Of a stretch of 64,000 bases of DNA, positions 35,531 through 37,769 are shown piece by piece; position 1 is the stretch's first letter; every line of letters starts with the position of its first letter. The notes under the pieces are model-generated. The model did no database searches, was not told where the DNA came from, and saw only the letters and a list, made by a program, of their open reading frames with translations. This DNA comes from Parasitella parasitica NRRL 2501 (taxonomy: Eukaryota; Fungi; Mucoromycota). The DNA lies in assembly GCA_025201805.1 (NCBI GenBank), contig MU619282.1:1-64000 (forward strand). The letters are read 5' to 3'. The position numbers and the translations under genes are program-made.

Positions 35531-36637
35531 TTAATTACTACCACGAGCAGCATTAAGGACCTCATCAGCAAAATCAGACTCCTTTTTCTCAATACCTTCT
35601 CCGACTTGCCAGCGGATAAAATCAACAACCTCAGCATCAGCAGCTTGCTGGACATAATCAGCGATAGTTAATTCTGGCTTCAAAAGATACTTTTGCTTAT
35701 TCAAAACTTGAGCCTCCTCAAATTCTTCTAAATTGGGTTGAGATTGTCGTTCACTTTCTGGGACATCTTGAGGGTTAAGCCAAGTGGGGTTGAAGCCGAC
35801 AACTTGACGGGCAATTTGGCGGGCAGTTTTGGCTAACGTTCCTGCAGAAGCTTCATTGACTTCTGCTAATGTTACCTTCTTGGGCTGAAGAACGGCAATA
35901 CCGCCCATCTTGCCGCTGTGAGCATCTCCACCGTGTATGTAACAAGCAGAGACCCCCTCTGCAACAATAGCGGCACGACGTAAAGAGATATTTTCACCAA
36001 GCTTACCGATGACCTCCACAATTGTTTCTTGAACAGTCTTTCCGATGTCGTCTGCTGAAATCAATTCATTGTCATCAGGGTGAGGCATTAATGGTGCATT
36101 GAGAAGAACGTCTACGGGGATAGACTCAATAAAGCGAGCGCTGGCGGCGGCAGGTCCATCATGCATTAACAAAGATGTGGCAGCAATTTTGGAGGCGAGA
36201 TTTTTGAAAACATCATTTCTAGAGACAAAATCAGTCTCGCAATTCAACTACAAGTAAAAAGAAGGGTTAGTTTGCATATGGAATCAGCCATTCATAAAGT
36301 ATACACTCAAATTTACCTCAATGATGGTGCTCTTGCTCTTGAACGCATTTGAGGCAGGGACTAGAACAGATGCTGTGGTAATCAAACCTTCACTGGCAGT
36401 TCTGCCAGCAACCTTTTGTGCTTTTTTAGCTCCAGAGATTTGAGCATCCTCAGACAACCAAGCTAATGCTTTCGCATAGTCATTGTTGGTCTTGACAAGG
36501 GCCTCCTTTGCTTTACTCATAGAAACTTCGGTCTCCTTGCGAAGTTCCTTTAGTAATTTCATATTTGGCTTTACTTCAGTAGAATAGCCTCTAGTCAGAG
36601 TACGATGAAGATTGCGAAAGACACTGAGCTTGTTCAT
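35531..36637 (-). CDS. TSFM: Mitochondrial translation elongation factor Ts
   Basis: Presequence-like N-terminus; LLKELRKET...KAKEAL, KVAGRTASEGL, E|LNCETDFVSRN, GENISLRR and GEGIEKKESDFADEV motifs. Confidence 0.93.
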
Positions 36638-36767
36638 TTTACGATTAATTATTGAATGACAAAAAAGAAGACAGGGGCATTCGCTGAATGGGTCATTTCG
36701 ATGCTGTTCATTATAGTCTCAGATCTACACACCTTCTACTCACAAGCATGGTGGCTTGGGATGTGCT

Positions 36768-36804
<37 letters not shown>

Positions 36805-36914
36805 TAGTGGACTTCATGATTTCGTGAAAANNNNNNNNNNNNNNNNNNNNNNNNNNNNNNNNNNNNNNNNNNNNNNNNNNNNNNNNNNNNNNNNNNNNNN
36901 NNNNNNTGTGCTGG

Positions 36915-36947
<33 letters not shown>

Positions 36948-37077
36948 AACAATAGTGGACTTCATGATTTCGTGAAAACCTCCTCTCTTTCGTCTATCTT
37001 TTGATTTCTGTAAGTGCTTGGTTTTGAATAAATTGAACAATTGAAATTGCCTCTAAACAGCGAAATTCAGGTTCAAA

Positions 37078-37572
37078 ATGGCCCCTACTGTCAAGTCCAA
37101 GAAGAACACCGAGTCCATCAACTCTCGTCTCCAACTTGTCACCAAGTCTGGAAAGTACACTCTCGGTTATAAGACCACTTTGAAGACTATTCGTCAAGGA
37201 AAGGGTAAGTTGATCAATATTGGAAACAAACAAAAAAAGCGATCTCTGTATCATTCTAGGGGGACAGGAGCCTCTTTTTTATTTCGTTCTACGCCTCTAT
37301 CTTTTTTTTTTTTTTTTTTTGGCAGAGATCGTCCCCCATTCAACTCTCTTATTAATGCCTTGCATCTAATAGCCAAATTGATCATTATTGCTGGTAATTG
37401 TCCTCCTCTTCGCAAGTCCGAGATCGAGTACTATGCCATGTTGTCCAAGACTGGTGTTCATCACTACAACGGTAACAACATCGATCTTGGTACTGCTTGT
37501 GGTAAGCTCTTCCGTACCAGCGTCCTCTCCATCACCGATGCAGGTGACTCTGATATCTTGACCGCCCAATAA
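37078..37572 (+). CDS. RPL30: 60S ribosomal protein L30 (eL30); intron 37205-37372
   Basis: [48 protein letters not shown] and GDSDIL; intron bounded by GTAAGT and TAG. Confidence 0.97.
37239..37337 (+). promoter_or_regulatory. Putative intronic L30e-binding kink-turn RNA element with competing helix
   Basis: GGGGGACAGGAGCC (37259-37272) and GGCAGAGATCGTCCCCC (37321-37337) form canonical k-turn geometry resembling the yeast RPL30 autoregulatory site. Confidence 0.65.
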
Positions 37573-37769
37573 GTTAACTATTCTCATGAATAAAATTATG
37601 GAATATAATGCCATGCTATCACAAAAAGTGTATCGATGATCAGTTAAGCAGTCGATACGAAATTTTGGCACCACACAGCATAATTACAACAAAACATTCG
37701 TTATAAAGAATTTGACATGAGAACGACAGGACACACATTTACCTAGGACGTTTTATTATTCCAAAACAA

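Follow-up and report, generated by a model that had tools for sequence, protein, structure and literature searches.

A kink-turn conserved in an RPL30 intron of Mucoromycota is a candidate sensor for eL30

The RPL30 (eL30) gene of Parasitella parasitica NRRL 2501 carries, within an internal intron, a kink-turn (k-turn) that shares its core with the autoregulatory L30 site of Saccharomyces cerevisiae. The window, that is the whole 64,000-nt stretch analyzed (contig MU619282.1, positions 1 to 64,000), contains this gene at 37078-37572 of the forward strand. Comparison of RPL30 introns provides strong sequence-level evidence that the k-turn is selectively conserved in Mucoromycota, both paralogs of this genome included. 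We regard the intronic k-turn as a candidate binding site, or sensor, for free eL30, and assign this reading a probability of roughly 0.7.

RPL30 in the window consists of two coding exons, with one intron in the 5'UTR and another between the coding exons. The features are as follows.

37010..37070, + strand: 5'UTR intron, GTAAGT...TTCAG, 61 nt (the loose end of an RNA contig from run X7 before 37071 reads ...TATCTTTTGATTTCT, which is the window up to 37009)
37078..37204, + strand: first coding exon of RPL30/eL30, ATG at 37078, 42 codons plus 1 base (translation, spliced RNA contig)
37205..37372, + strand: phase-1 intron, GTAAGT...TAG, 168 nt, holding the k-turn; an open frame with no in-frame stop in the window copy (X7 record 11 joins 37204 to 37373)
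37352..37356, + strand: likely branch-site motif UUAAU, with the inferred branch A at 37355, 17 nt before the intron end (motif scan)
37370..37372, + strand: 3' splice site UAG (spliced contig)
37373..37572, + strand: last coding exon of eL30, stop TAA at 37570-72 (translation, relatives, solved chains)

Coding exons were compared singly rather than as a joined, spliced protein. The eL30 proteins annotated in Rhizopus, Cunninghamella, Phycomyces and Zychaea, each with Pfam PF01248, are 94-98% identical to the last exon, 64 of whose 65 residues align to solved eL30 chains, yeast 1T0K among them. This exon is highly conserved and contains GKLFR, by our own count probably the position of yeast F85. 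Head-to-head upstream of RPL30 lies a gene for mitochondrial EF-Ts (35531-36637, - strand; PF00889). The same neighbour precedes RPL30 in Phycomyces, Zychaea, Umbelopsis and the assemblies of loci L005 and L008, indicating conserved synteny. The RPL30 promoter includes an N run (36830-36906, in the region 36765-36978), both flanks of which present GTGCTGG, a long T-run and then AACAATAGTGGACTTCATGATTTCGTGAAAA; with its repeated flanks it looks like a gap in the assembly whose edge was duplicated, and not like biology. Scanning 36900-37700 against Rfam at E up to 10 returned no snoRNA or other family, the sole match being CRISPR-DR26 at 36987-37011 in the RPL30 5'UTR, which at 27.8 bits (E 0.017) falls below the gathering score of 39 and was taken as chance.

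RNA evidence for the intron came from contigs of four public runs placed on 36950-37700, of which X7 was judged from its behaviour to be an RNA run. X7 record 11 (155 nt, mean word depth 9624) covers 37079-37222 with 4 mismatches and then reads CTGGTAATTGT. Since the first 18 bases of the intron differ from those of the next exon at only 4 places, both the length and the mismatches of this record are exactly as predicted for 37204 joined to 37373; the spliced contig aligned onto the intron because the intron start resembles the start of the next exon. The contig confirms the 37204|37373 splice, and the intron at 37205-37372 is therefore genuine. Inspection of the two starts (37205-37222 and 37373-37390) reveals 14 of 18 matching bases, with TTGATCA.TATTG common to both, a likeness that may reflect chance or a trace of intron origin. 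X7 record 12 (depth 127) has no break between the T-run and 37401 and represents either unspliced RNA or DNA carry-over. Intron retention cannot be quantified from contigs. Across the 11 related introns compared here, retention would introduce an in-frame stop in nine, a frameshift in Zychaea and neither in the window copy, where the 168 nt remain in frame and would insert 56 residues. We give the open frame of the window intron little weight, because the length of a T-run in an assembly is not very reliable.

The k-turn element occupies 37259-37337, entirely within this intron and 54 nt from the 5' splice site. Its parts are given below, where NC and C denote the two helices, n the non-bulged side, b the bulged side and L1-L3 the bulge.

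37259..37265, + strand: 5' strand of the NC helix, GGGGGAC (sequence, alignment, RNAalifold)
37266..37269, + strand: non-bulged core side, A (4n), G (3n), G (2n), A (1n) (GGA invariant in 11 sequences; matches yeast L30 RNA)
37270..37272, + strand: 5' strand of the C stem, GCC (pairs with 37321-23; compensatory C-G to U-A in Umbelopsis)
37273..37320, + strand: variable hairpin loop ending in a 19-T run, 37302-37320 (7 to ~95 nt and unalignable between species)
37321..37323, + strand: 3' strand of the C stem, GGC (sequence, alignment)
37324..37326, + strand: bulge L1-L3, AGA (L1 A or U; L2 G in 10/11; L3 always A; the yeast site also has AGA)
37327..37330, + strand: bulged core side, G (1b), A (2b), U (3b), C (4b, opposite A37266) (GA invariant; 3b.3n U.G in 9/11)
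37331..37337, + strand: 3' strand of the NC helix, GUCCCCC (sequence, alignment, RNAalifold)

The 5' strand thus reads GGGGGAC-A-G-GA-GCC (37259-37272) and the 3' strand GGC-AGA-GA-U-C-GUCCCCC (37321-37337). Tandem G37327.A37269 and A37328.G37268 pairs follow the bulge, and U37329.G37267, the C37330.A37266 mismatch and the 7-bp NC helix complete the structure. In layout this is a standard simple k-turn, with C stem, 3-nt bulge, tandem G.A/A.G pairs and NC stem all present in the sequence. The same generic layout occurs in 10 of the 11 related introns, the eleventh (Gigaspora) being degenerate. The first-pass annotation had proposed this geometry, and every coordinate and pair it named is borne out; the yeast sequence it had given also matches the published construct (PMC3706390 Table S1), with an identical core. 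The 3b.3n pair has been linked by rule to k-turn class, and that of the yeast L30e pre-mRNA k-turn is U.G (PMC5061560); the U.G pair of the intronic element predicts the N1 class. Nearest-neighbour folding does not favour the k-turn helix in 5 of the 11 introns, the window included, where forcing the NC helix costs 4.5 kcal/mol relative to the best fold in a model that takes no account of protein or of tertiary contacts in the k-turn. The k-turn hairpin is the predicted best fold in the introns of Phycomyces, Zychaea and Umbelopsis.

Conservation of the element is seen both within the genome and across Mucoromycota. A second RPL30 copy in this genome (locus L002, G000:C11:353718-354100, - strand) has a last exon 91% identical to that of the window copy and an intron of 130 nt that is unalignable to the window intron outside the k-turn (15/48 matches in the loop, 28/54 upstream). 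The k-turn of the paralog, GGGGGGC-A-G-GA-GCC / GGC-AGA-GA-U-U-GUUCCCCC, differs from that of the window at 3 places, all of which keep or improve pairing (C.A to U-A, A-U to G.U, G-C to G.U). This paralog also has a 5'UTR intron of its own. At 37108, X7 contigs bearing paralog variants account for 25,054 of a word depth of 34,678, ~2.6 times as much as the window copy, a weak hint that L002 is the more highly expressed copy.

Loci of relatives were fetched via their eL30 proteins. Rhizopus microsporus, Cunninghamella blakesleeana, Phycomyces blakesleeanus, Zychaea mexicana, Umbelopsis (two assemblies) and Gryganskiella (Mortierellaceae) all have the element in an intron at this phase-1 position, as do L005 and L008, from two assemblies that encode a Phycomyces-identical eL30 protein. 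In Umbelopsis the loop is 7 nt long and the C stem is GCU:AGC, a compensatory change from C-G to U-A. The Mortierellaceae form is GACCGGAGCUC-GCAA-GGGCUGAGAACGUC, and Gigaspora retains an exact 5' strand with a degenerate 3' strand (GGU-AAA-GA-U-AA-UCCC). Lack of conservation of the motif in orthologous introns had been named at the outset among the observations that would refute the proposal; it is instead present in these relatives, though degenerate in Gigaspora and missing in Bifiguratus. All 11 loci carry it in an RPL30 intron, that is, within the RPL30 transcript.

The 11-sequence alignment (A1) gives quantitative support to this conservation. GGA, GA and the A at L3 are invariant, and 89.5% of cells pair, versus 37-60% when the register is shifted. 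Changes on both sides of a pair occur at 4 pairs, and RNAalifold independently recovered the same two helices around a 4+7 asymmetric loop. Identity to the window reaches 11/14 to 14/14 and 14/18 to 17/18 in the two k-turn strands versus 13-55% in other parts of the introns. With an element that hardly varies and just 11 sequences in the alignment (~10 independent), covariation is thin. Conservation of paired strands together with compensatory changes led us to reject chance and DNA-level conservation as explanations.

Searches beyond the aligned introns indicate that the motif is specific to RPL30. A strict core pattern matched all Mucoromycotina and Mortierellaceae RPL30 introns fetched except that of Bifiguratus, while Gigaspora fails through its degenerate 3' strand; elsewhere in 174 kb of eL30 loci it matched only twice, in helix-less sites downstream of the gene. 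A covariance model (R1) applied to the 32.8-Mb genome returned only the two RPL30 introns, with E about 1e-11 and 2e-12, in a run that scored 150 of ~34,800 first-look candidates. Of 90 other eL30 loci, R1 found Gigaspora alone, which belongs to its own training set, and matched none of the remaining 89. A generic k-turn scan detected exactly one k-turn per Mucorales or Umbelopsis intron, versus 0.04-0.34 expected from shuffles, and none in the introns of Bifiguratus, Syncephalis and Geranomyces. The motif was absent from Syncephalis, Geranomyces (5 assemblies), Schizosaccharomyces cryophilus, Basidiobolus (an intronless copy), Bifiguratus and 80 metagenomic eL30 loci, so that the Zoopagomycota, chytrid and fission-yeast loci sampled all lack it. 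Within this small sample, only Mucoromycota have the element, and Bifiguratus lacks it although it has an intron at the same position. By eye, the Bifiguratus adelaidae intron (L012:1329-1571) contains GGAUGAUGC and CGAUGAAG stretches, which recall box C-like letters.

A separate search of the assembly with an LSU model and a sarcin-ricin-loop pattern returned only C61:68109-68718 and C243:13299-13611 of G000, both partial and AT-rich, which we took for putative non-nuclear copies. Nuclear 25S was not located with this model and pattern; nuclear rDNA may be unassembled, or may have been missed by a stricter first look.

The placement of the element relative to the branch site is also shared. 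In 10 of the 11 introns, the 3' strand of the NC helix ends 5-15 nt before a CUAAC, CUAAU, CUGAC or UUAAU motif, and the 3' splice site follows 15-55 nt after that motif. The initial proposal of a wholly intronic element that ends just upstream of the likely branch site (UUAAU, 37352-56), and hence of an architecture other than that of yeast, where the site lies at the 5' exon and 5' splice site, agrees with this spacing and with the spliced contig. Closeness to the branch point actually used is not universal, because in the 549-nt Mortierellaceae intron the k-turn lies ~190 nt from the used acceptor; a CUCAC occurs there 12 nt after the k-turn.

Because the core is that of the yeast site and is kept while the rest of the intron drifts, the element is probably a feedback sensor placed differently from that of yeast. 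The SF3a/SF3b subunits of the U2 snRNP contact ~20 nt just 5' of the branch point in a sequence-independent manner. In yeast, eL30 bound near the 5' splice site blocks U2 binding (PMC8047918). We envisage that eL30 present beyond the demand of ribosome assembly would bind the k-turn on nascent pre-mRNA, and that the bound protein and the 7-bp NC helix would together occupy the stretch where the U2 snRNP is held. Use of the branch site would then fall and less mRNA would be made, providing negative feedback, and the unspliced RNA would be unproductive in the 10 of 11 introns that bring a premature stop or a frameshift. This particular step, occlusion of the branch site or of U2, is more tentative than the sensor itself and falls a little short of even odds. 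Lying wholly within the intron, the site would permit control of splicing only, and not of mature-mRNA translation as in yeast.

The first-pass annotation had gone further, proposing a protein-responsive switch between two states, in which the k-turn alternates with a mutually exclusive 11-bp helix and a cryptic acceptor yields a transcript with a premature stop. The competing strand is

37239..37249, + strand: competitor strand GCGAUCUCUGU, able to pair with 37322-37332 and so exclude the k-turn (MFE fold, duplex energy; not conserved)

This 37239-49/37322-32 helix exists as described. It appears in the predicted MFE fold of the intron, its duplex energy of -18.3 to -18.7 kcal/mol is unusual against shuffles (z about -5, p about 0.001), and substitutions in two related strains (A37238>G and G37239>A) keep it and would lengthen it. 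What did not hold is its conservation. When the best competitor to the bulged strand was compared with dinucleotide shuffles, p was 0.001 for the window, 0.035 for the paralog, 0.058 for Rhizopus and 0.079 for L005, with all others at 0.36-0.999; these further competitors are weaker, non-homologous and differently placed, lying upstream or in the loop. Excluding the window, and L008 as a close relative of Phycomyces, the nine other introns combine to a non-significant Fisher p of 0.2. No competitor was found in the introns of five lineages (Phycomyces, Zychaea, Umbelopsis, Mortierellaceae and Gigaspora), in several of which the k-turn is the best fold.

The alternative acceptor fares similarly. 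CAG 37323-25 follows the T19 tract (37302-20) and resembles a 3' splice site, and its use would indeed place TAA 37367-69 in frame, but it is replaced by CUG in 4 of the 11 sequences and by UAA in Gigaspora, and no contig among those listed joins the exon to 37326, although contigs drop rare isoforms. Mutually exclusive intron structures do have precedents in yeast RPL7B and RPL22 (PMC12311795, PMC13630204). A conserved intron switch of that type is not what the comparison reveals, with a competitor significant only in the window, and we consider the two-state reading unlikely. The competitor helix is a real sequence feature of the window lineage, of uncertain function and outside the conserved element; there, it may raise the eL30 threshold. 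A broader scenario is rated no higher, being speculative and improbable as a whole: an ancient eL30 sensor would have been reused by setting the k-turn on the U2 anchoring region, some lineages, that of the window among them, would have gained an anti-k-turn helix and with it a protein-operated two-state switch, and the cryptic acceptor may add an unproductive isoform.

Under another reading, the hairpin would serve as a zipper stem and its k-turn-like loop would be incidental. The hairpin does span most of each intron: its start lies 22-64 nt past the 5' splice site and its end 5-15 nt short of the branch motif. Zipper stems are known to enhance splicing in ribosomal protein introns of yeast (PMC12311795). 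However, a zipper needs pairing and not an invariant asymmetric loop, whereas here the unpaired GGA and the GA after the bulge are the most conserved positions and equal those of the yeast L30 site. Given also that the motif is limited to RPL30 within the genome, we judge this reading very unlikely.

Least probable of all is recognition by another protein of the L7Ae family (Snu13/15.5K, Nhp2, eL8 or eS12), for example on a snoRNA-like or kink-loop RNA derived from the intron: k-turn recognition is common to the family (PMC5061560), mammalian intronic 15.5K-bound K-loop RNAs are reported to suppress excision of their host intron (bioRxiv 10.64898/2026.08.03.742641) and CUGA occurs in the 3' strand of 4 of the 11 sequences, but the partner strand offers no box C (RUGAUGA) to pair with a box D CUGA as in box C/D k-turns or K-loop RNAs, no snoRNA family matched in the Rfam scan, L3 is always A with U.G at 3b.3n as in the L30 site, and the motif is tied strictly to RPL30 in every lineage and in the two paralogs, which points to eL30.

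Autoregulation by eL30, the reading we prefer, is the textbook example of how a ribosomal protein can control the splicing of its own transcript, and to our knowledge it has been dissected only in Saccharomyces. If the reading is correct, the presence of the same RNA core at a different gene position in early-diverging fungi would mean that eL30/k-turn feedback is either very old or repeatedly re-invented, and the introns would offer a natural test of whether a block to U2 recruitment that works from the 5' splice site works from the side of the branch site too. The short, near-invariant motif is a possible marker for RPL30 introns in Mucoromycota annotation, and it is a compact candidate for a protein-responsive splicing module in fungi with few genetic tools. 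No description of this intronic RPL30 element was found in the literature searched, a search whose reach excluded most subscription journals.

Comparison with known systems distinguishes the element from others proposed for the same gene or the same logic. Li and Breaker (2017) described the rpl30 motif, a conserved hairpin that is associated with RPL30 genes, has an internal loop rich in purines and has been proposed as a site of eL30 autoregulation (PMC5640933). It lies mostly in the 5'UTR, is known from Pezizomycotina only with no Mucoromycota representative, and has a different consensus (AAUGAUC ... UGAUGAUAAGGAU); with another location and another consensus, the intronic k-turn is not a member of that motif. 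In Schizosaccharomyces pombe, the product of one of the paralogs rpl30-1 and rpl30-2 lowers splicing of the pre-mRNA of the other (Lemieux et al. 2011, as cited in PMC4695336). The present genome likewise has two eL30 paralogs, both with the k-turn site; the cross-regulation, as far as that source describes it, is given without an RNA site, and the one Schizosaccharomyces locus compared has neither an intron at this position nor the motif. In the RPL7B and RPL22 introns of yeast, mutually exclusive structures set splicing in response to the cognate protein, and the competitor helix of the window would fit such two-structure logic. The alternative structures of those yeast introns are conserved across species, whereas the window competitor is confined to its lineage.

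The closest relative remains the S. cerevisiae site, which lies in the same gene. The autoregulatory k-turn of S. cerevisiae RPL30 (formerly RPL32) is reportedly described by Vilardell and Warner, Mao et al. (1999), Chao and Williamson (2004; PDB 1T0K) and Macias et al. (2008). Gel-shift and structural work on the yeast site used an L30 RNA that consists of NC stem GGACC, G, GA, GUGUC, a GCAA loop, GACGC, AGA, GA, U and GGUCC (PMC3706390 Table S1). Both elements share the -1n/-1b G-C pair, the AGA bulge, the tandem G.A/A.G pairs and the U.G at 3b.3n, and GGAG together with GCAGAGAU is identical to the yeast oligonucleotide; they differ at 4b.4n, where a C.A mismatch in the window replaces a Watson-Crick pair of the yeast construct. 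The ligand, eL30, and the step controlled, recruitment of U2, would by analogy be the same. In contrast, the 5' exon and the 5' splice site together make up the yeast site, which is kept in the mature mRNA, making translational control possible, a feature that is missing here, where the site lies wholly within an internal phase-1 intron after codon 42 and adjoins the branch site. Taken together, the sequence comparisons make a conserved RNA element well supported, as a new placement of the known yeast-type L30 site core with a putative role for eL30.
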